Below are positions 9,986 to 40,750 of a stretch of 64,000 bases of DNA, piece by piece (within the stretch, counting starts at the first letter, position 1; the number at the start of each line of letters is the position of its first letter). The notes below the pieces were generated by a model. It was not told the origin of the DNA. It made no database searches and worked only from the letters and a program-made list of their open reading frames with translations. A program made the translations under genes and the position numbers. Where the stretch lies: positions 62,001 to 126,000 of IMG/VR virus record IMGVR_UViG_3300047510_001118. One strand, written 5' to 3'.

Positions 9986-9994
9986 GGTTGTTCC

Positions 9995-13142: not shown

Positions 13143-14083
13143 ATCTTATCCTTCTTTAGTTCATCAAGCAAAGTAACTATGTTAGTTATCATAGATACTG
13201 GGCGCCACTCAACTTTCTTAATCAAAGCATTGCCAGTATCCAGTAGTTGTTCGTAATCGTAGACTAATTCTTCTTGTAGTTTTTCTCCAGGTCTACGGCC
13301 AATTATAAGTTGCGGATAGTTCTTGGGTACTAAGTCCATTATAGATTGTTCTTCGCCCATGTCTAAGATATAAGTTGCTTTGGCAAACTCTAAGTGAACA
13401 ACATTAATGATCAACGACACAGCATCCTGTACTGAAATAAAATAACGTTTCATTTCAGGATCTGTAATAGTAATAGGCAAGTTGTTTGCTACCTGCCATT
13501 CTAAGGTTTCAACAAAGGAACCCGACGATTTATAAACATTGCCAAATCTTACTATCTTTATTTCTGCGTCAGAAGTTCTAGCATATTGTTGTACAATACG
13601 TTCACACCATAGTTTAGTATATCCCATGTTGTTAGTAGGATTAACTGCTTTGTCGCTGGATATGTGTATCATGGACTTGACTTGGTCAGCATGATCACAT
13701 AAGTTAATAACAGATAGAATATTATTCTTAACAACTGAATAAAAGTTATTTTCGTCTTCTAGTGTGTCTACATGTTTGTAAGCCGCGGCATTAAAAACGT
13801 AATCTATTTGATACTTGTTGAATATTAAATCTACTAGTTTCTTATCGCTAACATCTCCGACTATACAATGTACGTTCTTAGTGCCAATGCCGCGTTGTAG
13901 TTTATAGATAGCGTACTCGCTGATGTCAACTGCTATGATAGTTTTTGCCTGTATCTGATTTACCAGTTCACTGCCAATAGTTCCACCGGCGCCTGTCACT
14001 AGCACAGTGCTGTCCTTAAAACTTACAGGCTGATGTATTGGCAGTTTATTCTTCATTTTAATAGAAATTCCATTACTAGACAC
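13094..14083 (-). CDS. CapD/PglF-like UDP-GlcNAc 4,6-dehydratase
   Basis: VTGAGGTIGSEL, AAAYKHV, ISSDKAVNP, MGYTK, RFGNV, GRRPGEKL; real start probably MKNKL. Confidence 0.9.
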   Translation of the reverse strand: MSSNGISIKMKNKLPIHQPVSFKDSTVLVTGAGGTIGSELVNQIQAKTIIAVDISEYAIYKLQRGIGTKNVHCIVGDVSDKKLVDLIFNKYQIDYVFNAAAYKHVDTLEDENNFYSVVKNNILSVINLCDHADQVKSMIHISSDKAVNPTNNMGYTKLWCERIVQQYARTSDAEIKIVRFGNVYKSSGSFVETLEWQVANNLPITITDPEMKRYFISVQDAVSLIINVVHLEFAKATYILDMGEEQSIMDLVPKNYPQLIIGRRPGEKLQEELVYDYEQLLDTGNALIKKVEWRPVSMITNIVTLLDELKKDKICLKTLNEIITTTTIL

Positions 14084-14709
14084 AATCGATGGTCGTCACT
14101 CTTGTGTTCTCCAACTGCGTGTGGAAGGTCAACTTTATGTATAACTAGATCTCCGGTTTTAACTGACACAGGAAATATTTCTTCCTTAGGTATGGATCGA
14201 GGATCTATACCCATCTCACAATATCTTCTAGTATTTTTTAAAATTAGTAAATCAGCACTGTTATCCGGTGCTTGTAGATAAAAGATTGCTACGACTTTTT
14301 TAGGTGAATTAGGATCGCTGTCATCGTCGTGCGTATGACAATTACCAAAGGATCCGTTATACATTACATTCATCCAGTTGATAGTTAACTGCGGTTTAGA
14401 TGTCAAATCTAAATCAAAGTGCTCTGCTACGGACTGTACTTTTTCTGATATCCATTCTAACAACATTTCTGAATTTTGAAAATCAAAAAAAGACCTTGCT
14501 GGAGTTTCAAAACTACTCCATACTAATGTTTCTCCGCTGACGCTATTTTTGTCTAGGTTACATGACTGATTATCTCTTATATTTGAATCTTTAAGTTCTT
14601 TTAAGGCAGAATCAATCCAGACTGGTTGTATATGTTTTCCGTCGTCGGCCAAGTTAAACTTGTAAATGTCATAGCCAAATGCTGATATTTTCTCTTTAAA
14701 ATTGTTCAT
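14053..14709 (-). CDS. putative 2OG-Fe(II) oxygenase
   Basis: HTHD...H...R pattern (CHTHD, LPHAV, HRL). Confidence 0.7.
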   Translation of the reverse strand: MNNFKEKISAFGYDIYKFNLADDGKHIQPVWIDSALKELKDSNIRDNQSCNLDKNSVSGETLVWSSFETPARSFFDFQNSEMLLEWISEKVQSVAEHFDLDLTSKPQLTINWMNVMYNGSFGNCHTHDDDSDPNSPKKVVAIFYLQAPDNSADLLILKNTRRYCEMGIDPRSIPKEEIFPVSVKTGDLVIHKVDLPHAVGEHKSDDHRLCLVMEFLLK

Positions 14710-16217
14710 TTGAAACTGTATCCTAGTTTATTATTTTTATAGTTTTCTAAAAATATAGGAAAATTTCTATAGTAAGGACCTAAAGACTTAGCACTTCCCC
14801 TTATTTTTTCTTTTAATGAAATAATTTTTCCATTATCATCTGGTAATATATTTGAAAGATAAAAAGGATCTAACCTTGACAAATCGTGCTGTCCTACTTT
14901 CCAAATATCGAAAAACTCTTTTACCCATTTATGAACTTGAATAACATTTAAATGATCATTTTCCCATGCTATGCTTCCAAAACTGCTGTGCTTAATCATA
15001 TCTTTAAATGCGGCTTTTACTTTTTCATCATCTGTTATATTCATCTCTCTGTAGCCATATTTTTTATAATCTAGTGATAACTCTGATGGCCTAAACTCAT
15101 CTGCTATTCGTTGTATCTCTAATGTATTAGCCATAGCCACTTGATCTGTCCAGTTTTTTCTAAACCAGTCACTTGTTTCATTTAAAGATTCAATAGTCTC
15201 ATACGGCAATCCACCGATCATTGCGATTATAGCACGATATAATCCATTGGATTTTTCTGTAAAGTATTTTTTAACTTCTATTAGTCCTTCTTTTACTTTA
15301 TCCGGATGCATGCCTTTGCCAATGACTTTTCCGCTTGCGTGGTTAAATGTTTCAACACCGTAAAAGTGTCCTAGAAACCCCATACGGATTAAATGATCCC
15401 AATCTTGTCTACGACTAATCAATAAGTCTGCTCTTATATAACCTGTAAAATATGGTTTGAATGGCAATGTTTCAACAACGTCAGCAAATTTAATAATTTT
15501 TTCTGTATGATCATTAAACGTTTCATCTGATACAATATAATTTTCAATTCCAAACTCGTCGTAATTTCTTAATAATTGATTTTTTACACTATCAGCATCT
15601 CTAGTATGATCCTCTTTAACTCCTAAGATAGGATAGTTACAGTACAAACATTTAAATTTACATCCCCTAGTAAACTCAATCATACCCCACTCGCCTGGTT
15701 GAATAAAATCTCGTTTTTCGTAAAAGATTGTTGCGTCTTTAAAAGGATAAGCCGGATACATATGAAGCGCATTAATAATTTTTGTATTGCCTTTAGATCT
15801 AACTACGTCAAATTTGGGTTTTTCGCCGTTACTAAACAAATATTTTAGAAGGGCATCTAAAGCATATTCTCCATACCCGGCAATATGATAATCAAAGTGT
15901 TTCATATCGGGTAGCATAGTTTGACCGCCGGACATTAACACAATATTGGGATATTTTTCTTTAATCCAAACACATAAATCTCGTATCTTATTTTCCGCAT
16001 CGGCATTGTTAAACAAAAAACTAAAACCAAAAAATTTCATGTTTTCGTCAACTCTGCTATCTACTAATTCTTTTAGTTCTTCTAATTCCCAGTAATCAAC
16101 AAAGTCTATAACTTCAACATCCCAGTCTTGTTTTCTAAGGTGAGTAGCGATTCTGTGAGCGCCAGAACTTCTATACATTGTATAATTGTTAACGGTAAAA
16201 AATAAACTTTTGTTCAT
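14706..16217 (-). CDS. B12-binding-domain radical SAM enzyme (class B-like)
   Basis: N-terminal Rossmann-like domain with GYGEY; EFTRGCKFKCLYC; DETFN; GVETF. Confidence 0.85.
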   Translation of the reverse strand: MNKSLFFTVNNYTMYRSSGAHRIATHLRKQDWDVEVIDFVDYWELEELKELVDSRVDENMKFFGFSFLFNNADAENKIRDLCVWIKEKYPNIVLMSGGQTMLPDMKHFDYHIAGYGEYALDALLKYLFSNGEKPKFDVVRSKGNTKIINALHMYPAYPFKDATIFYEKRDFIQPGEWGMIEFTRGCKFKCLYCNYPILGVKEDHTRDADSVKNQLLRNYDEFGIENYIVSDETFNDHTEKIIKFADVVETLPFKPYFTGYIRADLLISRRQDWDHLIRMGFLGHFYGVETFNHASGKVIGKGMHPDKVKEGLIEVKKYFTEKSNGLYRAIIAMIGGLPYETIESLNETSDWFRKNWTDQVAMANTLEIQRIADEFRPSELSLDYKKYGYREMNITDDEKVKAAFKDMIKHSSFGSIAWENDHLNVIQVHKWVKEFFDIWKVGQHDLSRLDPFYLSNILPDDNGKIISLKEKIRGSAKSLGPYYRNFPIFLENYKNNKLGYSFK

Positions 16218-17125
16218 ATAATGTATCTTAAGTCTTTCTTATCACATAGCTCTATTACAGCACGATCACAATACTTACAGACTTCGTACTGCATACTTAG
16301 AATCTTTTCGTAGTCGCCATCCCATTCTTTGCCTTTGCTGGCTTCTAAGAAGAGATAACAGGGATATACTTTGCCGTTTATGTCTACCTGCTGACTCTTG
16401 TTTTCCCAACTCATACAGTAAGCCTTACCTTTGACAGGACTAGCATATTTGGCCCTAGCAAACTTATCCATGTACATGTAATCATCGATCTTTTTAGGAT
16501 TAGGACGCAGTTTAATTAAGTTTGTTTTGTCCACATAGTTGGCTTCATCTTTCTGTAAGAAAGTCTCAGTCCAATACACATGACTAAACTCACTAACCAT
16601 TTCTTTAAATTTAGGACTGTCAAAGTCCTCCGAGTTGTAGTAGAACCTGATACACTGGGCATAGTCATTTTTACTAGGTCCACGGAAAGCGCGAGCATTT
16701 TCTAATATCCTTTTTAAATTTGTTCCTGTACGATAAATTTCGTGTAGTTCTTGTGTGCTACCGCAGATACTAAAATATACTTTGTCGTTGGCATTCATCA
16801 GTGTGGCTAGCTCTGCCCACCATTCTGGCTTGTGCGTATCTCCGTTAGTACAGATTTCAATCTTTAATCCTCGATCCTTCATGTACTTGACTAAAGGAAA
16901 GAAATATTTGTACATGGTAGGTTCTGATATAGTACCAACAAGACGTATCCATTCTAAATCAGGGAAGGTTTCTAACTGTGCTATAACTTCATCCAAGGGT
17001 CTAACTTTATCTTCGGGATAGTGTTCTTTAAATGCTGTGTAGTTACGATAACACAGGCCGCACTTGGCATTACAGTATGTTGTAAGTTCTAACTCTAGGT
17101 CAATGACCTTAGGCATCTTCAGCAT
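16214..17125 (-). CDS. radical SAM protein (paralogue A1)
   Basis: CNAKCGLC, SEPT, TNG; C-terminal Cys cluster. Confidence 0.9.
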   Translation of the reverse strand: MLKMPKVIDLELELTTYCNAKCGLCYRNYTAFKEHYPEDKVRPLDEVIAQLETFPDLEWIRLVGTISEPTMYKYFFPLVKYMKDRGLKIEICTNGDTHKPEWWAELATLMNANDKVYFSICGSTQELHEIYRTGTNLKRILENARAFRGPSKNDYAQCIRFYYNSEDFDSPKFKEMVSEFSHVYWTETFLQKDEANYVDKTNLIKLRPNPKKIDDYMYMDKFARAKYASPVKGKAYCMSWENKSQQVDINGKVYPCYLFLEASKGKEWDGDYEKILSMQYEVCKYCDRAVIELCDKKDLRYII

Positions 17126-18048
17126 ACAAAGTCCAATCCCATTTTATCAATAAAGGTACGTGTGCGCTTCTCACATAGGAAACAATCTGGAAACTTAAAG
17201 GATAGGATATCACCGTAGTCCATGTCATCCTTGTCTGCTGGAAAGTAGTCTTGCTCGTTCTCAGCGTGAGTATAGCAGGCACTGACCTGTCCCCATTGAT
17301 TGATATAAATCTTTTTAGATTGCATACTACGACATTGTATGGTATATTGTTTTCCATCATTAGGCTCTGGGCGATTCTTAAACAACAACTTGATAGTTTG
17401 CTCCCGGGTCTTAACTGGACGAATGCCTAGTTCCACTTCTTTATTGTAGACGTTTACTCTACGCACACCTTCTGTTTCAACTTTCATTACACGACTAAAT
17501 TGATCAAAGATTGCTTTCATCGCAGGGCTTTCTCTATCCTCAGCATTGTACTCAAATCGTATATGTTGTATCCAATCGTTCTTGCGACCATTTTTACGAA
17601 AAGCAGCCGCATTATCTAATATTTGTTGTAGGTCACTGCCCACACGATACTTGGCATGTATTTCCTGTGTACTTCCGCAAACAGTAAAACAACACATACA
17701 CTTTTCAGGTACGATACTGCCTAACTGTTCCCACCATTCAGTATCGCGTGTATTGCCGTTGGTAAAGATTTCATAATAGATGTCACGACTGTTTAGGTAT
17801 TCAATAAACTTAATAAAGTCTTTGTACATTGTAGGTTCACTGACTACACCCGCAACAAAGAAACGTTTAAGTCCCGTGTATTGATCTAATTGTTTAATAA
17901 TAGTATCAATGTCACGTACATTCTTTTCTACTAGATGATTTGCGTGTTGATAGTTACGAGTACATAGTGGGCAGGAAAGGTTACAGACTCCTGTTAAGTC
18001 CATTTCCATTTCTTCCACTTCACTCTTTTTCATCGTAACCTGCGTCAT
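17119..18048 (-). CDS. radical SAM protein (paralogue A2)
   Basis: CNLSCPLC, SEPT, TNG; C-terminal Cys cluster. Confidence 0.9.
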   Translation of the reverse strand: MTQVTMKKSEVEEMEMDLTGVCNLSCPLCTRNYQHANHLVEKNVRDIDTIIKQLDQYTGLKRFFVAGVVSEPTMYKDFIKFIEYLNSRDIYYEIFTNGNTRDTEWWEQLGSIVPEKCMCCFTVCGSTQEIHAKYRVGSDLQQILDNAAAFRKNGRKNDWIQHIRFEYNAEDRESPAMKAIFDQFSRVMKVETEGVRRVNVYNKEVELGIRPVKTREQTIKLLFKNRPEPNDGKQYTIQCRSMQSKKIYINQWGQVSACYTHAENEQDYFPADKDDMDYGDILSFKFPDCFLCEKRTRTFIDKMGLDFVC

Positions 18049-18962
18049 CCCATTCGCTCCATACCATTACTTTCTAACATTGTCTTAGTCATGCTTTCGC
18101 ATTCGTAGCAGTAACGATTATTAAATTCAAATATATCGCTGTAGTCGTTGTGATCAAACGTCCTATTGTCATATATTCTATGTAGGAAGCAAGGATGCTC
18201 TCCTCCAAAATTATCAACAAACAAAAATTTTAATTCAAAACTCTTACATTTCATTGAACACTTAGTTCCGCTGTCATATCGTTTAAGGACAGCATTACGA
18301 ATTACATTGTATTTTTCACCCAACTTGCCGGCCATCTTTATATCGTTGTTAGGATCTTTAATTATATTAAACCGTTCTTGATAAGGAGCAGACTCGCAGA
18401 CATACAAATGATTAAATTCTTTAATAATCTTTTTCATGTCATCTGATTCTAGATTATCTTTGTTGTATTCAAAACGGATCAACTGTATCCAGTCGCTGGT
18501 ACATCCCGATTTACGAAATGCTTCAGCATGTCTTAACACTTGTTCTAAACTAGAATTGACACGATATTTTTCGTGTAACTCTTGTGTTGTGCCACAGACT
18601 GTAAACAGCACACGGTCTCTATCTTTAACTAGAGTTCCTAGTTCTTCCCACCACTCTTCTTTGTGTGTGTTAGCATTAGTGTATAGATCAAAACAAATGT
18701 TTCTAGAATTGAGGTATTTTATTAACTCTAAGAATTCTTTGTACATTGTAGGTTCACTGACTGCTCCACTTAGACAAGTGTATTTTAAATTTGGAAAACT
18801 ATCTAGGTGAGCAATCCATTCCTCTAAAGGACGGATGTGCTTGACATTAAGATGTTTAGCATTTTCATAACTTCTAGAACAAAGTGGGCAATCAAGATTA
18901 CAAGTACCCGTAAGCTCAAGTTCCAATTCTAGTATTTCTTCGCGTTTTAATCCAATAGTCAT
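18045..18962 (-). CDS. radical SAM protein (paralogue A3)
   Basis: CNLDCPLC, SEPT; C-terminal Cys cluster. Confidence 0.9.
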   Translation of the reverse strand: MTIGLKREEILELELELTGTCNLDCPLCSRSYENAKHLNVKHIRPLEEWIAHLDSFPNLKYTCLSGAVSEPTMYKEFLELIKYLNSRNICFDLYTNANTHKEEWWEELGTLVKDRDRVLFTVCGTTQELHEKYRVNSSLEQVLRHAEAFRKSGCTSDWIQLIRFEYNKDNLESDDMKKIIKEFNHLYVCESAPYQERFNIIKDPNNDIKMAGKLGEKYNVIRNAVLKRYDSGTKCSMKCKSFELKFLFVDNFGGEHPCFLHRIYDNRTFDHNDYSDIFEFNNRYCYECESMTKTMLESNGMERMG

Positions 18963-19582
18963 AGGTATATTATACTGTCAAAGTCTTTCTCTTTAAACAC
19001 TCTCATTTTTGATTCTTCGCTCATTCTGTTATGGTGTTTGGCCAGCATGGCGTGTTTTAATTTGGTAGATAGTATTACTCCATTAATACCTTCTGGATTA
19101 GTAGCCGCAACAAGATGGAACTGTATCTGTGGGTATTTATTGAGGAACGCTTCTAGATTTTTAAAATTGTTATCTGTTACTATTAATAGATACTGTAAAT
19201 TTAATTCTGAATCAATTATTATATCGTCCTCCGGATCTAAGTTCTCGCTACAGTGATATAGGACAGTATCAAAACGAGGCAACAGATCACGATAGCGTTT
19301 GATAAACAGTCCGTTAGTGTTGATGCTAGGACGGCAACCTTTCTTCTCTAGTTCGTCTAGGATGTATTCAATGTCTTTGCGTTTCATACTACCCACTTCA
19401 CCGCCACTGAGTGTTACATTATATCCAGGAATAACTTTATCTAACTTGGCTTTTACTTCATCCATGGTCAGTGTAGGACGATTGTGTGTATCAACACAGC
19501 AATAGTCACAGTGCCAGTTACATACCCATGTAACAACTAATTCAATTTCTCGTTCTTGTGCGTGAATTGCCATTAGTGCCAC
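18959..19582 (-). CDS. short radical SAM protein (paralogue B1)
   Basis: CNWHCDYC, SGGE, NTNG. Confidence 0.88.
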   Translation of the reverse strand: MALMAIHAQEREIELVVTWVCNWHCDYCCVDTHNRPTLTMDEVKAKLDKVIPGYNVTLSGGEVGSMKRKDIEYILDELEKKGCRPSINTNGLFIKRYRDLLPRFDTVLYHCSENLDPEDDIIIDSELNLQYLLIVTDNNFKNLEAFLNKYPQIQFHLVAATNPEGINGVILSTKLKHAMLAKHHNRMSEESKMRVFKEKDFDSIIYL

Positions 19583-20151
19583 CTTGCCACAACTGTGATG
19601 AATTCTTGTAATGATCCTGGATGTACTTTATCTCCGTGTTCATTAAAGAAGTCCATCATTAAGTTTAAGTTAATCTTCTTTTGACTACGCACATCTGGTA
19701 ACAACAGAAACTTAATGTGCGGATAACGTCTAATCATTTCATGTATGCTTCCATCTAAGAAGTTTGTGTTTGTAACTACAAGTCCGTAGGCTACATGATC
19801 TAACTGTAAGTCCGGAAACTCTATGTCGTCGGGCAAGTATTCAACACAATGATAATGTATCTTACCAAACTCGTGTACCAACGGCATATGACGTTTAAAG
19901 AACAGTCCGTTGGTTAATAAATCAATTACACAGTCTTTATTTTTCAAGATGCCAATTATTTCTTCTAACTGTTCACGCTTTAACAGTCCAGGTTCACCAC
20001 CACCAAAGGTAACTTCTGTGCCTGGTTCGATGGCATGTACTCTACGCAGAACTTCTTCGTAAGGCAACTCTGGACGATTGTGTGTGTCTGCTACACAATA
20101 GTCACAGTGCCAATTACACTTATAAGTTAAAGGAAGTTCTATTTCTTTCAT
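19573..20151 (-). CDS. short radical SAM protein (paralogue B2)
   Basis: CNWHCDYC, GGGEP, LTNG. Confidence 0.88.
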   Translation of the reverse strand: MKEIELPLTYKCNWHCDYCVADTHNRPELPYEEVLRRVHAIEPGTEVTFGGGEPGLLKREQLEEIIGILKNKDCVIDLLTNGLFFKRHMPLVHEFGKIHYHCVEYLPDDIEFPDLQLDHVAYGLVVTNTNFLDGSIHEMIRRYPHIKFLLLPDVRSQKKINLNLMMDFFNEHGDKVHPGSLQEFITVVARWH

Positions 20152-20816
20152 CTCAGTGCTTTTAATTTCCGTATATCATTTACTTCTCTACAGGTCGTAA
20201 TCAAATGTATGTAACTGTTTGGATCAATACGATCTTTAAATTCTTGATACACTTTAAATCCGTTTGTTCTACTAAGTCCTTTGCCAATAACGTTATCTGC
20301 GCCAAATACTAAAAATTTAATATCTGGATACTTGTTGATATAGTATTCTAATCTATTCATAGTATCATCGGTGATTACTAATTGGAAGTCTATCCTAGAC
20401 TGTTCAACATAATTTGGAATCCATATTTCATCGTCATCCAGGTGCTCACTACAGTGATATAAAAAACTATCAGGTATATGGCAAAGGTTACGATGCTTTT
20501 TAAAAAATGTACCATTGGTGTTTACATTTATGAAACAGCCCTTGTCTTTCAATGTAGTCAGTAGCCAAAGCATTACTTCTTTGTTTAATGTTCCGGGCTC
20601 ACCGCCTGTAATGGCCACATCTGCTCCCTGAGGTATCTTATCTACTTTCTCTTTTAATTGCTCAATCGTTATATCTTTTCTATTATGTGTATCTTCACTA
20701 CAGTAATCGCAGAACCAATTACATTTGTAAGTCACATAGAGAGTATAGGAATTGGCTCCGTCTAGGCCTCCTTGAAAGAACTCGTAGTTTTCGTGTAGAT
20801 TATTCCCAGCAATCAT
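20148..20816 (-). CDS. short radical SAM protein (paralogue B3)
   Basis: CNWFCDYC, TGGEP, NTNG; start placed at MIAG (20816) to avoid a long overlap with the SDR gene. Confidence 0.85.
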   Translation of the reverse strand: MIAGNNLHENYEFFQGGLDGANSYTLYVTYKCNWFCDYCSEDTHNRKDITIEQLKEKVDKIPQGADVAITGGEPGTLNKEVMLWLLTTLKDKGCFINVNTNGTFFKKHRNLCHIPDSFLYHCSEHLDDDEIWIPNYVEQSRIDFQLVITDDTMNRLEYYINKYPDIKFLVFGADNVIGKGLSRTNGFKVYQEFKDRIDPNSYIHLITTCREVNDIRKLKALR

Positions 20817-21432
20817 ATACTCTTCCGTTCTGTGTATCGCCAAATATGTGTTCGTAAACTGTGTTAAATTGTCTGTGATACTTTTCTTTGTCTTCATAGT
20901 CAAACATAGGACTCACTGAACTAACATTTACACCTTTGTCGTTATGTTCAGCCAAGGCTAACATTAACTGATGTTGATAGGCTTTGCCGCCATAATATCC
21001 TAACTTGTCTAAACCAAAACTACGTTCTCTATCGTAAATTACATCAGTGGTCATGAACACAATTTTAGATTGACTGTTCATTTTCTTTAATGCTTCTATG
21101 GATAACGTGTGTGGTATAATTGTCTGTACATAAAATCCCTGTATGTATAACTTTTCTTTTATTATTCCTTTGCTGGTAAAAGAGTCAGGTTCATTGGGAT
21201 ATCCTTTATAAGCAGAGTTGTATAATAAAATATCAATTGTATCTAAGTCCTCTGTTACGGTATTAAATTTAACAACCGCATCTTCCGCAGTTAAGAATGT
21301 TAAAGTCGCATCAGTATCGTTGCCAGTCCTATGAGATAGTACACGAACAGCATGTCCGTTGGACTTTGCTTGGCGAACAAAGTCGTTACCAAATTGTCCA
21401 AACCTACTGCCGCCGACTACAACAATATTCAT
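20800..21432 (-). CDS. SDR-like NAD(P)-dependent oxidoreductase
   Basis: VVVGGSRFGQFG, YYGGK. Confidence 0.7.
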   Translation of the reverse strand: MNIVVVGGSRFGQFGNDFVRQAKSNGHAVRVLSHRTGNDTDATLTFLTAEDAVVKFNTVTEDLDTIDILLYNSAYKGYPNEPDSFTSKGIIKEKLYIQGFYVQTIIPHTLSIEALKKMNSQSKIVFMTTDVIYDRERSFGLDKLGYYGGKAYQHQLMLALAEHNDKGVNVSSVSPMFDYEDKEKYHRQFNTVYEHIFGDTQNGRVYDCWE

Positions 21433-22454
21433 TTGTAGTATCCTTGTCTATAGAAGTTTACCTGATCAATCTTTTCGCCAGGTTCGGGTCTCAGTGTTAC
21501 ATTCTTAATCTGTTTCTCTACACCGTCACAGATATAGTAATGCTTACAGTTTAAACAGTCTTTGGTTTTATAATAAGTTCTATTGCGTTTGAATGCCGCC
21601 GCATCATACAGAGCCTTGTGTGGGTCCGCACGATACACCTGTGGATCTATGTCACCATTGTACACAGCAATATTCCAATCGTAGATGTCATAGATATGTT
21701 GATAGTAATTACAGACATACTGCTCATAGCCCTTCATAAAACAATAGGGCGTGTATCGAACATTGATCTTCTCTACAATATCTTTAAGTAAGTCTATGGC
21801 CTGATGTACATAGGGAGTAACTTCAGCATAGTCTATGGTTTCCTGTGCGCCAGCATCGTCCCAATAGTTCAGTGTTAGGAAGTTTACTTCAAATGGTTTG
21901 AGTTCTTTGACTAGCTCAACAAACTTAGTAGGCAAGCTCTTATAATTCTTATGTGTGACTGTACAGTTAACTCTAACCAACACTCCTAGTTCGTGTGCGT
22001 TTTTAATTGCCTGTACAATGTTCTCAAAGCCTTTGCGATGTCCTACTAGGATGTTGTGGCTTTCTTTATCATAGCCGTGTACTGAGAACAGTATTTCTTC
22101 TAAGCCGTGCTCTTTGCTTTTACGTAAGAACTCTTTGTCGGCAAACTTGTAGCCGTTGCTCAGTGTGCTGACCTTTAGTCCTTTACTCTTACAGTAGTCC
22201 AGTATGTCAAACCATTGCTTGTGTATACTACTTTCTCCGCCACTGAGATCTGCTTCTTTGATGCCGCAGGCTACAAGATAGTCTATTCGTTGTCGTATGG
22301 CATCGAACTCAGTTACATCATTTAACTGTGTTTTGTAATAGCAGAATTCGCAACGATAGTTACAGTGAGTGCCAGTGTCTAACTTGGCACGTTCACAGAT
22401 TGGTTCGTCACGGTCTATCTGTAACTTGTTGCTGAGTTCGTTGTAAAGTCTCAC
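21429..22454 (-). CDS. radical SAM protein with C-terminal Cys cluster
   Basis: CNYRCEFC, SGGE, SNG; CLNCKHYYICDG. Confidence 0.9.
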   Translation of the reverse strand: MRLYNELSNKLQIDRDEPICERAKLDTGTHCNYRCEFCYYKTQLNDVTEFDAIRQRIDYLVACGIKEADLSGGESSIHKQWFDILDYCKSKGLKVSTLSNGYKFADKEFLRKSKEHGLEEILFSVHGYDKESHNILVGHRKGFENIVQAIKNAHELGVLVRVNCTVTHKNYKSLPTKFVELVKELKPFEVNFLTLNYWDDAGAQETIDYAEVTPYVHQAIDLLKDIVEKINVRYTPYCFMKGYEQYVCNYYQHIYDIYDWNIAVYNGDIDPQVYRADPHKALYDAAAFKRNRTYYKTKDCLNCKHYYICDGVEKQIKNVTLRPEPGEKIDQVNFYRQGYYK

Positions 22455-23271
22455 GTTCTATCTCTTGGTATTGTTGATCAACTGGCACAGGATTGATCAT
22501 ATATTTCTTTTTACTTTCGGCCATTAGTTTAAAACTGCTGATGCTTTCCTTGTAACAGGTTCTACTAAAACTACTACAGTGTTTGACACAGATGCTTTGA
22601 CTGTCAAAAAACTTGTAGCGTATTGGATCTGTCAGTGCGTCTTTTAATGATGTATTGTGTAAGTTAGCAAAGGCTACCCTATCGTTAGGTGGTGTGTTGT
22701 CTTTGACAAACTTACAGAATACTACATCGCCATTGGCCATAATCTTAGGCATACTATGGAAGTGGCATTTGAGTTTAGGATCAAACTCTTCTGTTATCTT
22801 TGTGCCTGTGTAGTTAAACTCGTAACCATAATCTCTACGCTCTAGTTTATATTGTATGCCGTTAGCATCTAATTCTTCTAAACGTTTATGTACAATATCA
22901 AATAGATTCTTATCCATTGCTGTTAGTTCTTTGAAACGAGCAGGAGTATCTCCGTAGTAACTGACACAGAGTTTAATATTGTTCATAGGAACTTCTGCCA
23001 ACTTACGTACATTAACTGCGGTAACATTAGTAAACACAATGGTATACTTCATATGTTCGTTGAGGAACGCTAACATTTCATAGATGTCAGGATGTAAGAA
23101 TGGCTCTCCCTTTGCGGGGATAAGATCTATTTCAGTAATGCCCATTTCCTTTGCTTCAAGTATTATTCGTTTGAACAAGTCCAACGGCATATACTTTGGT
23201 TCAGTAATGTCTTTGGCTTTACAAAAATAACACTTGAAGTTACAGTACTCTAGGATCTCTACAACAATCAT
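22408..23271 (-). CDS. radical SAM protein with twitch/SPASM-like C-terminus
   Basis: CNFKCYFC, KGEPFLHP; C...GDVVFC...C. Confidence 0.88.
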   Translation of the reverse strand: MIVVEILEYCNFKCYFCKAKDITEPKYMPLDLFKRIILEAKEMGITEIDLIPAKGEPFLHPDIYEMLAFLNEHMKYTIVFTNVTAVNVRKLAEVPMNNIKLCVSYYGDTPARFKELTAMDKNLFDIVHKRLEELDANGIQYKLERRDYGYEFNYTGTKITEEFDPKLKCHFHSMPKIMANGDVVFCKFVKDNTPPNDRVAFANLHNTSLKDALTDPIRYKFFDSQSICVKHCSSFSRTCYKESISSFKLMAESKKKYMINPVPVDQQYQEIERETLQRTQQQVTDRP

Positions 23272-24164
23272 ATTATACCTTTAAGTATGTTCACAAGGTC
23301 GTCACTGGGTCTTAGACACAGACTATCAAAGTCGTTTTCTATATCCCAGTTGCGCCAGTACAATCCGCGATCCTCGTCCCAATAATCGATATTGTGGAAA
23401 ATTACGGATTTACCGTAATATTTACATTCTGCTATGAACCTGGGACTACAATCCCATTTACGCTTAACTGGAGTATAGACGTAAGTGCCAAACTGTTCAA
23501 ACAAGTCGTTCACAGGAGGAATTACAAAAGTAAATCCATTTATAGATTTAGGCATATTCTCTTTGTTTGTTATAACTAGGATGTCATTGCCGTACTGCGT
23601 TAGTTCTTCATAGGAGTCTAACTGTCTACAGTTCTTAGTAGCATAGACCAACACTGAATCCTTACTAGGACCCAGTGTTTTTAATCTATCAAATAGAATC
23701 TTCTTTTTATAATTGACACCGTTTTTCTTTACAAGTTCGTAGACGCGATTGTCTTGTAAGATCCATACATTATCTTTGTCGTTGTCTTTGATTTCTTTAT
23801 TGCCGCAGGCAAAGTAAAAGATGTTATCAAATAACAGTGTCACCGGCCGCATATTAACTATGCCGCCGTCTGTGAATATTATGTTGCGTCCCTTGACCAA
23901 TGTAGGTCTATTGGCAAACACTGTGTTAGATTTGATATCCTCTATCTCTTCGTCTGTGAAATTGTATTTGCCACGGATACTGGATTCAAACGTTGGCCAG
24001 TCAATGTCTTCGCAGAGCAGTACTCCAACTTTGAAATCATTTCTTAGAGTAAAGTAATAATCTATAACTTCATAGGTGTGTCCACAGATGCCATGATTGT
24101 TATTGCTCCAAGAGTAACTAAGCCAAAGATCATAGGAGTCGTCTAACTGTGTTATCTTAGACAT
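23268..24164 (-). CDS. hypothetical, possible GT-B-like glycosyltransferase
   Basis: C-terminal SPRFIAECKYYGK resembles the GT-B donor-binding E..G motif. Confidence 0.4.
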   Translation of the reverse strand: MSKITQLDDSYDLWLSYSWSNNNHGICGHTYEVIDYYFTLRNDFKVGVLLCEDIDWPTFESSIRGKYNFTDEEIEDIKSNTVFANRPTLVKGRNIIFTDGGIVNMRPVTLLFDNIFYFACGNKEIKDNDKDNVWILQDNRVYELVKKNGVNYKKKILFDRLKTLGPSKDSVLVYATKNCRQLDSYEELTQYGNDILVITNKENMPKSINGFTFVIPPVNDLFEQFGTYVYTPVKRKWDCSPRFIAECKYYGKSVIFHNIDYWDEDRGLYWRNWDIENDFDSLCLRPSDDLVNILKGII

Positions 24165-24940
24165 GCTCGCACCATAGGACAGTTTTCTGTGAGAGTATAG
24201 TTACCTAGTCCGTTGACAACTATATCGTTGTAGCGTAATTGTATCGAGTCAGTGTTGAGATTGTAGGGTTCTTCTACAGTCACAGTCTTACCATAAAAGA
24301 ATCCTTCTGGTATGATCCTGTTGTTGGTATCTCTGACTACATGGATGTAATGAACAGCATCAATTTGATCAAATAGATCTCCAATGCCTGTATGTTGTTT
24401 TTTTAATAAGATAGGACGATTGAATTGTGTCTTTAATCTTTCATATTCATAGCGTATGTACTTTGGATCAAGACAACTGACAAATACGCCAGATTGACTC
24501 TTACAGGGTCTGAATATTTCAAAGTTTAATTTTAAGATACATTCTACATCGTAGCGTTGATATGGATACAATCCATAGTAGGTAACTGTGCGATTATTCT
24601 TATAACGAAACATCTCGTGTGTGTCATTGCTGAAACAATGTATTTCGTTGGTTAAGAATTCTTTACAGTCATAGAAAGTGTTTACATCGAGGATGAGTGT
24701 ACGATCAAGATTGAGTTTATATAACTCAACTAAGGTAACTGGAATTATGTTGTCAACTACAGTGTCGTATTTTGCCGTAAGGATTTCAACGACTAGTTCT
24801 AGATCCTTTGCGTCTATACCAACAATATAAAACTTTGCGTCAACATACTTTCTTAGAAATTTAAAGTATTCGAAACAGTAAAACAATGTTCCGTTGATCT
24901 TATTGTGTGGTTTAAACTTGTATACAACACCATAGTTCAT
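24152..24940 (-). CDS. hypothetical, paralogue of 23268-24164
   Basis: GTLFYCFEYF and NNRIIPEGFFYGK align with the neighbour's GHTYEVIDYY and SPRFIAECKYYGK. Confidence 0.45.
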   Translation of the reverse strand: MNYGVVYKFKPHNKINGTLFYCFEYFKFLRKYVDAKFYIVGIDAKDLELVVEILTAKYDTVVDNIIPVTLVELYKLNLDRTLILDVNTFYDCKEFLTNEIHCFSNDTHEMFRYKNNRTVTYYGLYPYQRYDVECILKLNFEIFRPCKSQSGVFVSCLDPKYIRYEYERLKTQFNRPILLKKQHTGIGDLFDQIDAVHYIHVVRDTNNRIIPEGFFYGKTVTVEEPYNLNTDSIQLRYNDIVVNGLGNYTLTENCPMVRACLR

Positions 24941-24942
24941 TA

Positions 24943-25560
24943 TCAGAAGTTTGCGTAGAATCGCTCTAAGAATCGCTCTTCTATGGCTTTGATTTCTTCA
25001 ACTGTGGTAGCCGCACGTATTTCATTTCTAAATGCCGTGAACTTACGTTCTAAGTGTGCCACTGCTTCAATTTCGTCTTTGTAGTTGAGATAATCTTCTA
25101 ACTTGGCGATTAGTTTTTCGTCGCCAGTTTCTAAAATTTCTAGATACTTTTCTTCACGATTTTCATTAGTGATAAAATATCCGTTGGCGGCCATGTCGTT
25201 GTTTAATACAATAAATCCGTACATGGCAAAGCCGCTGATCTTAGATAGTTCTGGAGTTACCAGCATACGTATTTTGACTACAGACGCATCTCTGGCTTCT
25301 TGAATTGGATCTGTTTCTTTTAGATCAATGACATCAAACTCTCCAGGTAATACTTCTCCTGTCTGTAGAGTCTTGTGGATGTGTACTCGCTTGCCTTCCA
25401 TCAGTGCCTGTTTGATCAACTGATGGCTCATGTAAGAAAGACGCAGAATCTTTTCGTCTTTGTCTGCTTGATTATCTAGTGTGTTTTGAGTTACGTTTGT
25501 TACAAACCAATGTGTGCCACGGTCTTGTACTGTGGCTAAATCATATATGATGCTACTCAT
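24943..25560 (-). CDS. hypothetical protein adjacent to the Cys-rich S74 protein
   Basis: 205-aa ORF with a helical C-terminus. Confidence 0.65.
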   Translation of the reverse strand: MSSIIYDLATVQDRGTHWFVTNVTQNTLDNQADKDEKILRLSYMSHQLIKQALMEGKRVHIHKTLQTGEVLPGEFDVIDLKETDPIQEARDASVVKIRMLVTPELSKISGFAMYGFIVLNNDMAANGYFITNENREEKYLEILETGDEKLIAKLEDYLNYKDEIEAVAHLERKFTAFRNEIRAATTVEEIKAIEERFLERFYANF

Positions 25561-25561
25561 C

Positions 25562-26350
25562 TTATTCCTTTACTGTTGTTGGTTCGCTCCAAAGTTCTCC
25601 GTTGTTAGGTAGTCTGTCGTAGTGTACTCTAAAGAACCCTTGCTCATCGATTTCAACAGCATGAGAGTATTCGCTTTGTAATATCTCTCCAGCCATAACA
25701 CCGATATACTTTGTTTCAGGATCCCATGTATAAGTGTAACTGTAGATATTAATTCCTTCACGTGTGCCAAGGAATTTGATGTTTTGTTTTAGACGCTCGT
25801 CACTGTAGTTACAGCCGCAGTCTCTGTGGCAGTTACATACAGCATTACAGGTACAGTCTGAGTTACAAATACAATCTTGACGCATGATGTTGTATTTGTC
25901 ACGTAGAGCAATCCAGTGACTGTCGTCAATTAGTGCGCCTGAGCTATAACTATTGGCAGGAGTCGTAGCATCTGCCGGGTTAGTATACACAGCCGCGGTG
26001 CTACCTACAGGCTCAGTAACGTTATTTGTCTGTTGAACCATTAATTCTAAATCGTTAATCTGTGCGGCGGAAATAACAGTGCTAGTGCCGAACGCACTAG
26101 TTTGGCGATTAGCAACACCGCTGAAATGATTAACTGTTCCGCTGTTAGTTGTATGTGTTTTATAGCGGTCTAATTCTGCATTTATTTTACTACGTAAATC
26201 TTCGATATCAGCCGCAGTAACACGACCTGTGGTTACAGCAAATTCTGTACTAGATGACAATGGTCTGTTTGTAGAGCAGGCTCCACGATGATTTGAACAG
26301 GTTGTTGTTCCTGAACTATTTAAATTACAAAATGTTCCGCTACAAGCCAT
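25562..26350 (-). CDS. Cys-rich fibre-like protein with C-terminal S74 intramolecular chaperone/autoprotease
   Basis: (CxCxxx)4 at 25802-25873 immediately followed by YSDERLKQNI...GVMAGE...VHY. Confidence 0.8.
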   Translation of the reverse strand: MACSGTFCNLNSSGTTTCSNHRGACSTNRPLSSSTEFAVTTGRVTAADIEDLRSKINAELDRYKTHTTNSGTVNHFSGVANRQTSAFGTSTVISAAQINDLELMVQQTNNVTEPVGSTAAVYTNPADATTPANSYSSGALIDDSHWIALRDKYNIMRQDCICNSDCTCNAVCNCHRDCGCNYSDERLKQNIKFLGTREGINIYSYTYTWDPETKYIGVMAGEILQSEYSHAVEIDEQGFFRVHYDRLPNNGELWSEPTTVKE

Positions 26351-26351
26351 T

Positions 26352-27524
26352 TTAATATATTTCCTCTTGTTTGATTTCCTCGGGCTTTTTGGCTAGTTCT
26401 TTGTCTAGATAAGCCTGAACTGTGCGATCGATTTCCCCAAATGCTTTGTAGAAACCGCACATGTTATTTACCCAACGATCAGTCCAACGATCAAAGTAAT
26501 CTTCTTTCTTGCTGTTATCTAAGCTCGAAACAGGGCAAATCATACAGGTTGTGGCCACACAGCCCTTACAGATATCGCTGACTTCACGTGCTTTTGGCTG
26601 ATAAGTTGTGGCCATTTTAATAACTTTATCGATAAAATCAGCATCATCGATATTGCCGCCCGATGCCATTTGCTCTTTATTTGGACTATATAACGAACCG
26701 TGGCAAGCGTAACTGTTACCATCTACGTTGATAGCATGCATTGATGCTCCGCTTTGGCAATGACTCTTAGCATCCCCACCGTCAAACCAAGTACACAAAT
26801 GATGTCCGTATTTTTTAACAAACGCAATCTCTTCCTTGGCAATCATCAACATCTCTTTGCGGAAGTCTGCTACCATATCCGGCATTTTATCTATAGGAAG
26901 ATCTGTTACGTAGTCAATCGTAGGTGCGTACTCAACGCGGCAGTTAGGGCCAATGTCTTTGAATCTCTCATACAATGTTTTATAATCTTGCCAAGCATTG
27001 TAGATACCTCTCATTGTTGATAGGGGAACTGTGGCCTTTAGGCTTAGGTTAACACCCTTGCGAGCAAAGTATTCAAAGTTCTCAATAACCTGTGCTGATG
27101 TAGGTTTACCGCTGTGTGTTAATCGGAACTTGTCGTTGATGTTCTTACCATCGTAACTAAACTGAATGTTTAGTTTTTTAATATTGATATTATCTAATAC
27201 ATGTTCTAAACGTTTACGATTGTAACCGTTGGTATAGATATGGAATCCAATGTTTTCAATGTGTTGGAATTCCTTCATAATATCAATAATTAGATCTCCA
27301 TTAAGGGTTGGCTCACCGCCCCAAAAGTCGATCATCAGTTCATCATAGTTCTCTTTGAACCAAGCACTTTCGTAGAACTCTCTGATACGTACTTTTAAAA
27401 TATCTACTTTATCGTCGAGTCGGCGTGTATCTGTCTTTACACCTTCGAAGCAATATGAGCAACCTAGATTACACAGTGCTGTGGTTGTAACTTCTAGTGT
27501 AAATGATCCTTTTGATACTTTCAT
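26352..27524 (-). CDS. radical SAM/SPASM maturase
   Basis: CNLGCSYC, FWGGEP, YTNG; SPASM-like CQSG...GNSYACH...CKGC...CMIC...C. Confidence 0.92.
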   Translation of the reverse strand: MKVSKGSFTLEVTTTALCNLGCSYCFEGVKTDTRRLDDKVDILKVRIREFYESAWFKENYDELMIDFWGGEPTLNGDLIIDIMKEFQHIENIGFHIYTNGYNRKRLEHVLDNINIKKLNIQFSYDGKNINDKFRLTHSGKPTSAQVIENFEYFARKGVNLSLKATVPLSTMRGIYNAWQDYKTLYERFKDIGPNCRVEYAPTIDYVTDLPIDKMPDMVADFRKEMLMIAKEEIAFVKKYGHHLCTWFDGGDAKSHCQSGASMHAINVDGNSYACHGSLYSPNKEQMASGGNIDDADFIDKVIKMATTYQPKAREVSDICKGCVATTCMICPVSSLDNSKKEDYFDRWTDRWVNNMCGFYKAFGEIDRTVQAYLDKELAKKPEEIKQEEIY

Positions 27525-27751
27525 TTGATATCCTCAATGTTTAATATTTCGTCTAAGACTGACATCATTGTTTCCTCGCTGACCTTTTCTGGTTCTTCTT
27601 GGATGATGCCTAGCATATCTTCAGCAAGTTTGGCTAGATATTCTGCTTCCTCTTGAAACAGTTCTTCGTTGGACAAATGCTTGCTGGCTTCTAATAAGTG
27701 GAAGCTCGCATTGTATAGTGCCCTATTCATTTTCTTAATACTCGTAGCCAT
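27521..27751 (-). CDS. small acidic helical protein between two SPASM enzymes
   Basis: 76 aa, overlaps both neighbours. Confidence 0.65.
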   Translation of the reverse strand: MATSIKKMNRALYNASFHLLEASKHLSNEELFQEEAEYLAKLAEDMLGIIQEEPEKVSEETMMSVLDEILNIEDIK

Positions 27752-28760
27752 CTTCGTATTCCTTTTCCATTTCTTCTTTAACGACTTGTTTAAAATCTGG
27801 GTTATTTTTTAGGGCCGCTGTCATGCGTTTAACTTCTCTATACGTATATTTATAGATATCGCAGAGCTCGACTATAGGACCTTGGTTTTTAATCTGCTCA
27901 AATAAACAGCCCTTTTTACAGTAATTCTTAACTTCACAGGTCTGACAAACGGGCATTTGGGCATATTTGGGTATAGCCGCTATCATGTCCGGACTGTCTT
28001 TAAAACGTGTACAGGGCACAACTTTGTTTTCGCTGAACATAAACATATTTGTACCAGCACCGCAGTTATCCGTAGTAACACCTTTGCTGTGATAATCCAA
28101 AAAGTGTCTTAGATAGAACAGCACAAAGTAAGGCATGCCCTGTTCTGGATTGGCAATATACCAGTCAAACATCTCAGTAATGCCTACTTTGAGTTTATCA
28201 ACGCTGTCCTGATCCCAAGTACCTACGTCACGTACCAGTGTAAGTTCTGGGTTAAATCCAAAGTGCTCTTTGATCCATAGATGATTTTCCAATAAGTTAT
28301 AACAGCCTTTGGTTATCATGCTGTGGCAACTGACTTCGGGTAACTTCTTAAACAGTTCTCGCTTTTCAAAGAAACGTTGTTTAGTTCCTTTGCCGTTTAA
28401 CTGTAGTCTATTCTTATCCTGCCATAGTCCATCAAAACTGATAGAAACTTCTATGTTGTTTCTAACTAGGAAGTCTACAGTTTCTTCTGTAAGCAGTAAT
28501 CCATTTGTAGGCATGAATAGTTTGATGTTGCCATCATCACGCACACCTTCTAGTATCTCTTCTATCAAATCTATCTGTAGCAAGGGCTCGCCACCAAAGA
28601 AGTCTATCTTAATTGTTTCATCTGGATATTGCTCACGCATCTTACGGAACTCAGCCAAATACAACACAGGGTCAATACGATTCTTAGACCACTTGTCTAC
28701 TCCGCAATATGAGCAGTTAAGATTACATTTTTCGGATAGAACAACTAATAATGTCTTCAC
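27735..28760 (-). CDS. radical SAM/SPASM maturase
   Basis: CNLNCSYC, FFGGEP, PTNG; CGAG...VVPC...CQTC...CKKGC...C. Confidence 0.92.
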   Translation of the reverse strand: MKTLLVVLSEKCNLNCSYCGVDKWSKNRIDPVLYLAEFRKMREQYPDETIKIDFFGGEPLLQIDLIEEILEGVRDDGNIKLFMPTNGLLLTEETVDFLVRNNIEVSISFDGLWQDKNRLQLNGKGTKQRFFEKRELFKKLPEVSCHSMITKGCYNLLENHLWIKEHFGFNPELTLVRDVGTWDQDSVDKLKVGITEMFDWYIANPEQGMPYFVLFYLRHFLDYHSKGVTTDNCGAGTNMFMFSENKVVPCTRFKDSPDMIAAIPKYAQMPVCQTCEVKNYCKKGCLFEQIKNQGPIVELCDIYKYTYREVKRMTAALKNNPDFKQVVKEEMEKEYEDGYEY

Positions 28761-29528: not shown

Positions 29529-29574
29529 CTCTTTTAACATATTTGTGGAATATTTATTGGTTAAATACTATACT

Positions 29575-39087: not shown

Positions 39088-39089
39088 GG

Positions 39090-39118
39090 TTGACAGCCCA
39101 GGTCTAGTATTGTATAAT
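39090..39118 (+). promoter_or_regulatory. sigma70 promoter (leaderless start at 39125)
   Basis: TTGACA-17-TATAAT, ATG 7 nt later. Confidence 0.8.
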
Positions 39119-39124
39119 ACTAGC

Positions 39125-40748: not shown

Positions 40749-40750
40749 TG

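Follow-up and report, generated by a model that had tools for sequence, protein, structure and literature searches.

A conserved phage and Bdellovibrionota cassette that pairs SPASM radical SAM genes with a Cys-repeat protein carrying an optional S74 domain

A 64,000-nt stretch of IMGVR_UViG_3300047510_001118, a 278-kb viral contig from a giant aquatic phage (positions 62,001 to 126,000, referred to here as the window), encodes a 262-aa protein with 12 Cys, here called the Cys-repeat protein, immediately downstream of two radical S-adenosylmethionine (SAM) genes with SPASM-type Cys, SPASM1 and SPASM2 (Table 1). The linkage is strict in related phage contigs and Bdellovibrionota genomes. The Cys-repeat family is widespread and entirely unannotated, and together with the SPASM genes it makes a sharply delimited candidate enzyme-substrate pair. 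The explanation toward which we lean, though not strongly, is that the Cys-repeat protein is matured by the SPASM pair, in the manner of QhpD on QhpC or of the ranthipeptide enzymes, and that this is coupled to self-cleavage of a C-terminal S74 domain acting as a follower and probably to glycosylation. Going by gene content, the cassette seems to provide for a chemical maturation of protein that has not been described before; the literature on phage-encoded ranthipeptide/SPASM systems and on Halobacteriovorax radical SAM clusters yielded no description of it.

Linkage of the Cys-repeat gene to the SPASM genes

A search with the Cys-repeat protein found 20 loci with 31-92% identity, 15 on viral contigs and five in Bdellovibrionota genomes (Bacteriovorax BAL6_X, two Halobacteriovorax, Peredibacter, and one Bdellovibrionales metagenome-assembled genome). 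SPASM2 lies directly upstream of the Cys-repeat gene in all 20. SPASM1 is present in 19 of them, as is the gene for a 298-aa protein discussed below; a gene for a conserved 205-aa protein is present in all 20, directly adjacent in most, with a split S74 open reading frame (ORF) or an inserted gene between in four. Three further loci that were looked up have the same gene order. In the window, the Cys-repeat gene is separated from its neighbor on either side by a 1-nt gap.

The reverse search, with a SPASM2 profile, retrieved 78 viral loci with a bimodal score distribution: 33 at orthologue level and 45 generic radical SAM. A Cys-repeat ORF is found within 4 kb of 29 of the 33 orthologues (directly downstream in 27, elsewhere in 2), compared to none of the 45 generic loci. 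The four orthologue loci without one are those of three Campylobacter phages and one other contig. An earlier sequence-only reading of this DNA had proposed that the co-occurrence of the Cys-rich gene and the SPASM pair be checked, and it holds in both directions; the pairing is not due to chance. The Cys-rich gene was absent from 50,697 deposited phage genomes when these were searched at both the nucleotide and the protein level, and no cultured phage has it.

The core shared with the Bacteriovorax island comprises SPASM1, the 76-aa protein encoded between SPASM1 and SPASM2, SPASM2, the Cys-repeat protein, the 205-aa protein, two glycosyltransferase-like proteins (262 and 298 aa), a 341-aa radical SAM protein, and three of about 305 aa, as well as an amidinotransferase and proteins of 282 and 214 aa. 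The 205-aa protein has no PDB or Pfam match, and the 76-aa protein matches no family. A homologue of the latter is detectable by BLAST in 15 of the 20 loci; one locus, L019, has a divergent 100-aa ORF in the same position. The same locus has a 448-aa ORF (L019:10387-11733), which by eye may be of homing-endonuclease type, inserted between the Cys-repeat and 205-aa genes.

Table 1. Features of the cassette and its surroundings. Positions are those of the window unless a related locus (L number) is given.
Feature	Position	Strand	Remarks
SPASM1, radical SAM protein with canonical 7-Cys SPASM	27735-28760	-	PF04055 58.5 bits
Small acidic helical protein, 76 aa, no Cys	27521-27751	-	Between SPASM1 and SPASM2 genes
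SPASM2, radical SAM protein with variant SPASM	26352-27524	-	PF04055 43.9 bits
Cys-repeat protein, 262 aa, 12 Cys	25562-26350	-	N-terminal Cys/His cluster, three-helix core, (CxCxxx)4 array, S74
N-terminal cluster of Cys-repeat protein, residues 1-25	26276-26350	-	C3, C8, C18, C25 plus His, Arg
Cys array, residues 160-183	25802-25873	-	CICNSD CTCNAV CNCHRD CGCNYS
S74 / intramolecular-chaperone auto-processing domain, residues 184-262 and stop	25562-25801	-	Predicted cut S183/D184
Conserved 205-aa protein	24943-25560	-	Next conserved cassette gene downstream of Cys-repeat gene
GT-B-like protein, 262 aa	24152-24940	-	Paralogue of 298-aa gene, hhalign probability 97%
GT-B glycosyltransferase-like protein, 298 aa	23268-24164	-	AlphaFold2 pLDDT 91.3
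Radical SAM protein, 287 aa, weak SPASM match	22408-23271	-	Outside bacterial core
Radical SAM protein, 341 aa	21429-22454	-	PF04055 67.5 bits; core common to bacteria
210-aa protein, Rossmann-type N-terminus (read from sequence)	20800-21432	-	Homologue in L002, L010 only
Three short radical SAM paralogues, 251/192/207 aa	18959-20903 (18959-19582, 19573-20151, 20148-20903)	-	CNW-C-YC motif; phage-side only
Three paralogous radical SAM proteins, ~305 aa	16214-18962 (16214-17125, 17119-18048, 18045-18962)	-	C-terminal auxiliary Cys; core common to bacteria
B12-binding radical SAM protein, 503 aa	14706-16217	-	Phage-side only
Truncated nucleotide-sugar dehydrogenase, 245 aa	28757-29494	-	First gene of run; Pfam UDPG_MGDP_dh N-terminal and central domains
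Sugar-tailoring block: 2-oxoglutarate (2OG)-Fe(II) oxygenase, PseB/CapD-like dehydratase, short DegT aminotransferase, 282-aa unknown, amidinotransferase, 214-aa and 262-aa unknowns, epimerase, PIG-L deacetylase	7672-14709	-	Pfam and PDB
Split S74 ORF	L005:10559-10872		
Split S74 ORF	L020:10481-10800		
Split S74 ORF	L026:3486-3770		
Split S74 ORF	L027:2086-2346		
Split S74 ORF	L050:5720-6001		

The sequence-only reading had counted two full SPASM enzymes. SPASM1 does have the canonical seven Cys (C233, C250, CxxCx5Cx3C at 272-285, and C300), but SPASM2 is a variant (CxxCx4CxxC at 319-330, flanked by C256, C274, and C356), and the Pfam SPASM model misses both; it matched only the 287-aa radical SAM protein, below threshold. 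The best NCBIfam matches of SPASM1 are PapB (113.7 bits, cut-off 340) and QhpD (87.7 bits, cut-off 453). Those of SPASM2 are PapB (80.4), the CXXX-repeat-target maturase (64.9, cut-off 350), and anSME (56), all under their cut-offs, and the SCIFF maturase and CcpM are also among the best neighbors of the two enzymes. The best PDB match for both is CteB (5wgg for SPASM1, E 1e-11; E 8e-10 for SPASM2). Since all scores are far under the family cut-offs, the enzymes belong in no named family; judged by their nearest relatives, both are closest to thioether-forming or Cys-targeting peptide or protein maturases, an affinity that had been suggested from the sequence and is supported here by NCBIfam and PDB. 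Both begin directly at the radical SAM motif and therefore lack an N-terminal recognition domain.

Two known systems have properties that suggest them as models. QhpD is a SPASM enzyme that acts on a Cys-rich protein subunit, QhpC, installing several Cys-to-Asp/Glu thioethers, after which an extension of the substrate is removed. As with QhpD and QhpC (the quinohemoprotein amine dehydrogenase gamma subunit), the SPASM enzyme here is encoded beside a Cys-rich protein rather than a short peptide. However, a dehydrogenase partner and a subtilisin-like QhpE are both missing; what can be removed is C-terminal and predicted to be self-cleaving; the hosts are phages and Bdellovibrionota; and the QhpD score of SPASM1 is far under the cut-off. 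The second model is the ranthipeptide/SCIFF group (PapB-freyrasin, CteB-thermocellin; TIGR04115), which supplies the best profile and PDB neighbors of both SPASM enzymes. Its substrates likewise have regularly spaced Cys with nearby Asp or Asn, and one divergent relative of the Cys-repeat protein has a C-x3 repeat. Ranthipeptide/SCIFF substrates are 40-60 aa long with short leaders, however, whereas the proteins here are of 150-300 aa with a folded domain, and are accompanied by two maturases and a 76-aa partner, with no equivalog-level score.

The Cys-repeat protein and its optional S74 domain

The pattern first read from the sequence, with Cys at positions 3, 8, 18, and 25 and four CxCxxx units followed directly by SDERLK, was confirmed (Table 1). 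A tandem-repeat finder detected no DNA repeat beneath the array. The protein has 111 close homologues, and a profile made without the S74 domain finds 414 representatives at 50% identity (E ≤ 1e-3), 196 of them at E ≤ 1e-10. In 55 aligned members, C160, I161, C162, N163, D165, C166, C172, C174, C178, and Y182 of the array are invariant, as are R22 and E59 upstream of it; C18 and C25 are kept in at least 90%. The best 150 family representatives have a median length of 192 aa, with 3 exceeding 400 aa.

Next to divergent SPASM2 orthologues, the N-terminal domain is kept while the repeat is changed. In L050 the repeat is made up of about ten heptads of C-T-C-D-C-N-Y type, with 29 Cys; that in L051 consists of about ten C-H-S-N/D units, a true CXXX repeat; and L055 and L046 have shorter variants. 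Each of these still adjoins its SPASM2 orthologue. To find a recognition part that is kept, a Cys core that varies, and a maturase encoded alongside is, at the level of sequence, the signature of a peptide that is made by the ribosome and modified after translation (RiPP), here on a protein of 150-300 aa. In the narrower sense of a short peptide with a dedicated leader protease and export, the family does not qualify as RiPP precursors: besides the length of its members, no protease or transporter was recognized in the cassette.

AlphaFold2 (AF2) modeled the core and the S74 domain, the confident part of the core consisting of three helices. Both Cys segments have predicted local distance difference test (pLDDT) values <50, as would be expected if their structure needs crosslinks, metal, or oligomerization. 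A Foldseek search of the model against the PDB gave no match at E ≤ 0.001, and the family profile gave only chance-level matches to PDB sequences, with phi29 gp12 reaching E 0.5.

The unmodeled segments are also what would be seen with a metal-thiolate or disulfide knob, AF2 having been given a ligand-free monomer. Here the CxC repeats and N-terminal Cys/His would bind metal, or staple a trimer by disulfides, while the substrates of the radical SAM enzymes would be found elsewhere (sugars, other proteins). In keeping with this, CxC spacing puts both thiols on one strand face; His, Asn, and Asp are conserved inside the array; the S74 domain implies a trimer; and one relative has a HesB/IscA-like Fe-S carrier gene upstream of the cassette. 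We nevertheless consider a knob of this kind unlikely, as it does not explain why a SPASM2 orthologue is fixed beside the gene in nearly every locus despite the changing repeat, nor why both adjacent enzymes resemble Cys-targeting peptide maturases. The HxH iron sites of T4 gp37, P2 gpV, and phi92 gp138, with their repeated i/i+2 ligand motif near the end of a trimer, offer a precedent for a metal tip, but the residues here are Cys and not His, no fold similarity was found, and dedicated SPASM enzymes are encoded next door. We also considered, and rejected, the possibility that the Cys-rich protein supplies electrons to the radical SAM enzymes as a ferredoxin would: an S74 trimerization module and a hypervariable repeat number do not fit a redox carrier.

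The S74 domain, which had likewise been recognized from the sequence, is supported by several lines of evidence, with Pfam falling just short. PF13884 scores 19.2 bits on the window protein, under the gathering score of 22, although it is precomputed on many homologues. PHROG matches cover the S74 part at the C-terminus (E 5.6e-13), and Foldseek against BFVD gave 11 matches at E <1e-3 (best 3.7e-5), with a root-mean-square deviation of ~1 Å over 64-67 residues; most of these are named as auto-processing-domain or tail proteins, and the remainder are unnamed. At the junction, S183, D184, R186, L187, and K188 are each kept in at least 90% of the 55 aligned sequences. In its C-terminal position, Ser-Asp junction, Ser...Lys spacing, and fold, the domain is like those of K1F endosialidase, the T5 L-shaped fiber, and phi29 gp12. 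It differs in its cargo, a small helical protein with a Cys array rather than a long beta-helical or fibrous shaft, and in that about a third of the Cys-repeat family have it divided into two ORFs, with 12 residues in the first.

The S74 domain is in fact optional, being fused, split, or absent in roughly equal shares. Among the 150 best family representatives, S74 is fused in 38; another 48 terminate no more than 4 residues from the array Tyr; and a further 48 have only an SDxxLK tail beyond the array, in 43 cases of exactly 12 residues. Since the natural relatives without S74 end exactly at the array, where the cut is predicted, the array appears in all architectures to form the mature C-terminus or to adjoin it. 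This agrees with the sequence-only reading, which had made the array the mature C-terminus. Its idea of S74 as a follower is supported too, a removable self-processing module having been kept, split, or lost, but the same comparison shows that S74 is dispensable.

In the split form (tail motif SDxRLKxxIxY-x), the remainder of the domain is encoded, wherever the DNA was at hand, by a separate 84-104-aa ORF that abuts or overlaps the stop codon; one such locus, L005, is on the Peredibacter chromosome. This ORF matches the C-terminal ends of many tail-fiber PHROGs and Pfam S74 (22.2 bits for that of L050). It is in the -1 frame at all four junctions checked, which would be consistent with a programmed -1 frameshift. 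However, it has its own start codon (ATG within TAATG, GTG after AAGGAG, or TTG), and there is no slippery heptamer at the two junctions that were scanned (L005 and L020); for these reasons we prefer separate, coupled ORFs. We know of no described split S74 domain.

On one high-GC viral contig, a Hint/intein-like domain may follow the Cys array in place of S74 (L054:5808-6470). The match is weak (Pfam Intein_splicing, E 0.0019; PDB 8w20, E 0.009), and this is a single case.

A conserved leader-like domain joined to a hypervariable core also recalls RiPP precursors with long leaders, such as NHLP/Nif11. The N-terminal ~160 aa would then be the leader and the Cys-repeat end the core, a small secreted or cofactor-like product released after modification, with S74 or Hint merely unblocking the C-terminus. 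The removable follower module and the small helical partner protein would fit, as would the invariant Y182 at or next to the C-terminus, which recalls the C-terminal Tyr chemistry of mycofactocin, itself glycosylated. On the other hand, at least 25 kb of conserved surroundings contained no recognizable leader protease or exporter, conservation extends to the N-terminal Cys cluster, S74 is a trimerization-coupled module typical of fibers, and a few members have large extra N-terminal domains (for example the 832-aa P0368) and are not minimal. A long-leader precursor thus seems to us more doubtful than the metal or disulfide knob. Two other possible fates of the array end were considered. MftC-like decarboxylation of a C-terminal Tyr is unlikely, the residue after the Tyr being variable (none, A, G, S, or AY), and N-glycosylation at the N-Y-S triplet was rejected, as many members stop at the Tyr.

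Proposed maturation and destination of the product

In the maturation we favor, the Cys-repeat protein would be the substrate of the SPASM1 and SPASM2 encoded immediately upstream. These would most likely recognize its conserved N-terminal domain (residues ~25-158), perhaps together with the 76-aa protein. From the examples of QhpD on QhpC, and of PapB and CteB on ranthipeptides, we infer that they would most likely link sulfur to carbon as thioethers, using the Cys in the C-terminal repeat and possibly those in the N-terminal cluster. The S74 domain would, by analogy to known S74 domains, drive trimerization and then cut itself off at S183/D184, leaving a protein of ~183 aa that ends in the crosslinked array. 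The GT-B-like pair and nucleotide-sugar genes would then probably decorate the Cys-repeat protein, or a partner, with an unusual amino or guanidino sugar; candidates for building this sugar are the dehydratase, aminotransferase, amidinotransferase, epimerase, deacetylase, 2OG oxygenase, and the B12 and several twitch-type radical SAM enzymes. The most likely product is therefore a ~183-aa, probably trimeric protein that is crosslinked and perhaps glycosylated.

Several observations weigh against this. None of the enzymes reaches any NCBIfam family cut-off (for PapB, SPASM1 scores 113.7 against 340), which makes the type of reaction a nearest-neighbor guess. The CxC-rich, unmodeled segments would suit a metal-thiolate site equally well. 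No protease, exporter, or immunity gene was recognized. The Campylobacter phages of the genus Firehammervirus have SPASM homologues, but no Cys-repeat/S74 homologue was detected in them at the sensitivity used, so the SPASM enzymes can act on something else. The GT-B assignment depends on Foldseek E-values of 2.5e-3 and worse. As to where the product might be found, the protein core matches no fiber or spike structure (PDB, Foldseek), and a surface location is not evident from the bacterial chromosomal homologues, which have neither a signal peptide nor S74.

The sequence-only reading had assigned the product to a virion fiber. This is unproven: the protein is small, its three-helix core has no fiber or PDB fold match, and the gene lies in a biosynthetic operon. 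Of the usual marks of a phage fiber or spike, no fibrous or beta-helical shaft was found, and PHROG and BFVD matches cover the S74 part only. The shortness of the Cys-repeat protein also counts against a role in the virion or at the surface. Nevertheless, the same strand run includes a gene matching phrog_1645 ("virion structural protein") at 5367-6680, and relatives have a giant phrog_358/DUF4815 protein and a phrog_473 "virion structural protein" just upstream. Given the presence of S74, the virion genes nearby, and the few members with large N-terminal fusions, a virion or surface role is our preferred guess, with the product a structural or adhesive trimer of the virion or the cell surface.

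More tentatively, phages and predatory bacteria may have in common a dedicated apparatus by which a folded, trimerizing structural or adhesive protein receives radical chemistry of the RiPP type and probably an exotic glycan, with S74 as a disposable follower that is sometimes split and provided in trans and was possibly once replaced by Hint. No virion or cell-surface protein is known to us to carry crosslinks of thioether type, so this would be a first case, as it would be for an S74 chaperone in split form. That jumbo phages and Bdellovibrionota both have the cassette suggests that they have some need in common, which may be to attach to the envelope of a prey or host cell. If crosslinking does occur, radical SAM chemistry of the "natural-product" kind would serve to harden or functionalize a protein of the phage or predator, instead of yielding a small antibiotic. 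Viruses would then have a class of post-translational maturation new to them, and it would give a purpose to the long-puzzling radical SAM clusters of large phages, among them CP220 and CPt10. The series of fused, split, and absent S74 domains amounts to a natural experiment on auto-processing chaperones, and the split form could serve as a tool for trimerization and cleavage in trans.

Sugar genes, Campylobacter phages, and the rest of the window

The sequence-only reading had also suggested a connection with glycosylation, and the two GT-B-like genes inside the conserved core strengthen it. The top PDB matches of the 298-aa model by Foldseek are nearly all of GT-B fold, mainly glycosyltransferases. 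The best is PimA (probability 1.0, TM-score 0.50, E 2.5e-3), with SenB, GlgM, and SnogD also among them; no GT-B structure exceeds this TM-score or improves on this E-value, and no sequence family was matched. The protein has 391 homologues, of which none of the 120 listed has a Pfam domain. PDB sequence and profile searches with the 205-, 282-, and 298-aa proteins gave nothing usable.

The truncated dehydrogenase at the head of the run scores 118 bits against NCBIfam TIGR03026, under the cut-off, and is without the C-terminal domain. The short form is kept in most phage loci (13 of the 15 from the Cys-rich search), and in Campylobacter phage CP220 as gp019 (L025:10034-10804); it is therefore probably functional in a new role and not a pseudogene. 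In the sugar-tailoring block, the amidinotransferase (10617-11690, minus strand) matches StrB1, AGAT, and SxtG in the PDB at E ~5e-31 and is 59% identical to its counterparts in Bdellovibrionota islands, while Pfam is silent at E ≤ 0.001. An enzyme of AGAT/StrB1 type implies a guanidino-modified sugar or amine. Taken together, the sugar genes can be read as a pathway that makes an unusual sugar, of amino or guanidino type, and transfers it. The DegT aminotransferase gene (12507-13142, minus strand), at 211 aa compared to 357 aa in the bacterial island, overlaps both of its neighbors and is either truncated or a domain remnant. The 210-aa protein with a Rossmann-type N-terminus has no family match.

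With so many sugar genes, it is conceivable that the Cys-repeat protein is just an acceptor or carrier of a glycan, the cassette being an unusual-sugar island for virion or pilus proteins in which all the radical SAM enzymes tailor the sugar. The cassette certainly has the parts (two GT-B-like proteins, amidinotransferase, DegT, PseB-like dehydratase, epimerase, PIG-L deacetylase, UDP-sugar dehydrogenase, and B12 radical SAM), the N-terminus of the Cys-repeat protein is Ser/Thr-rich, and the Bacteriovorax island includes a type-IV-pilin-like protein with an S74 end. However, SPASM1 and SPASM2 resemble peptide maturases, not sugar-acting enzymes of the BtrN or DesII types; what is strictly conserved is the Cys repeat and not a glycosylation sequon; and the N-Y-S triplet is lost in forms ending at Tyr. 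Of the three alternatives to maturation by the SPASM pair, a glycan acceptor is to us the least probable.

The Bacteriovorax island continues with further sugar genes. The pilin-like protein (531 aa; L022:14940-16535, Bacteriovorax sp. BAL6_X, AUMC01000003.1) has a type-IV-pilin-like N-terminus (G-FTLAE) and a C-terminal S74 domain (SDENLK); a pilin joined to a phage-type auto-chaperone is, to our knowledge, unusual.

Among cultured phages, only Firehammervirus (CP220, CPt10, CP21) has homologues of SPASM1, SPASM2, the 205-aa protein, the GT-B-like protein, and the truncated dehydrogenase. Radical SAM genes of unknown role, 11 in CP220 and 12 in CPt10, were reported in these phages in 2010 (PMC2853527), which makes them a precedent for phages with many such genes. 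The homologue of SPASM1 is gp023, that of SPASM2 is CPT_0184, and that of the dehydrogenase is the gp019 mentioned above; CP220 gp184 is 34% identical to the 298-aa GT-B-like protein, and CP220 gp015, which is encoded beside baseplate-hub genes, resembles the C-terminal half of the 205-aa protein. These homologues differ from the cassette in being dispersed, with identities of 25-41%. Two small ORFs lie beside the CP220 SPASM1 homologue: gp020 (L025:10829-11206, 126 aa), which has a weak likeness to the 76-aa family (25% probability by hhalign, E 7.6e-4) and a C-x4-C-x-C motif at its end, and gp022 (L025:12122-12346), which has a CxxC. Both are possible peptide substrates in the Campylobacter phages.

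The eleven CxxxCxxC enzymes that the sequence-only reading had counted in one minus-strand run (14706-28760) are all there, each above the gathering score of PF04055 (32.3-67.5 bits, against 29.5). Its picture of eleven radical SAM genes centered on the Cys-rich protein needs qualification: six (SPASM1, SPASM2, the 341-aa protein, and the ~305-aa trio) belong to the core common to the Bacteriovorax island, but five are additions on the phage side, namely the three short paralogues, the 287-aa protein, and the B12 type. Also found on the phage side only are the 2OG oxygenase and the 210-aa Rossmann-type protein. The 341-aa gene is 49% identical to its Bacteriovorax counterpart and present in 18 of the 20 related loci; the trio is 44-50% identical to Bacteriovorax genes, with TIGR04317 as its best NCBIfam match (50-80 bits, cut-off 380). 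The 503-aa B12-type protein has an N-terminal B12-binding match of 27.3 bits, under the gathering score of 32.1, and also matches B12-radical-SAM NCBIfam families. At least five enzymes besides SPASM1 and SPASM2 have partial SPASM or twitch-like C-terminal Cys. Many of the radical SAM enzymes probably tailor a sugar.

Elsewhere, the window encodes a DnaB-type helicase, a primase, a helicase, an HNH endonuclease, and three tRNAs; by helicase (~50% identity), the nearest cultured relatives are PA5oct-like jumbo phages. Nearly all genes from ~29.5 kb down to ~1.7 kb are on the minus strand and tightly packed. The HNH endonuclease gene is just upstream of this operon (31185-31697, minus strand). 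Divergent from the operon is a full-length 5-aminolevulinate synthase gene (29545-30777, plus strand; NCBIfam TIGR01821, 568.9 bits, above the cut-off), an auxiliary gene of the tetrapyrrole pathway; a radical SAM enzyme of B12 type is encoded by the same phage. The region from 38000 to 54000 has many short plus-strand ORFs and a GC content of 0.46-0.49, compared to 0.33-0.42 elsewhere in the window. Ribosomal RNA was ruled out as the content of this ORF-poor, GC-richer block, since Rfam on the whole window gave only three tRNAs (Met, Leu, and Arg), which lie within the block at 51957-52206.

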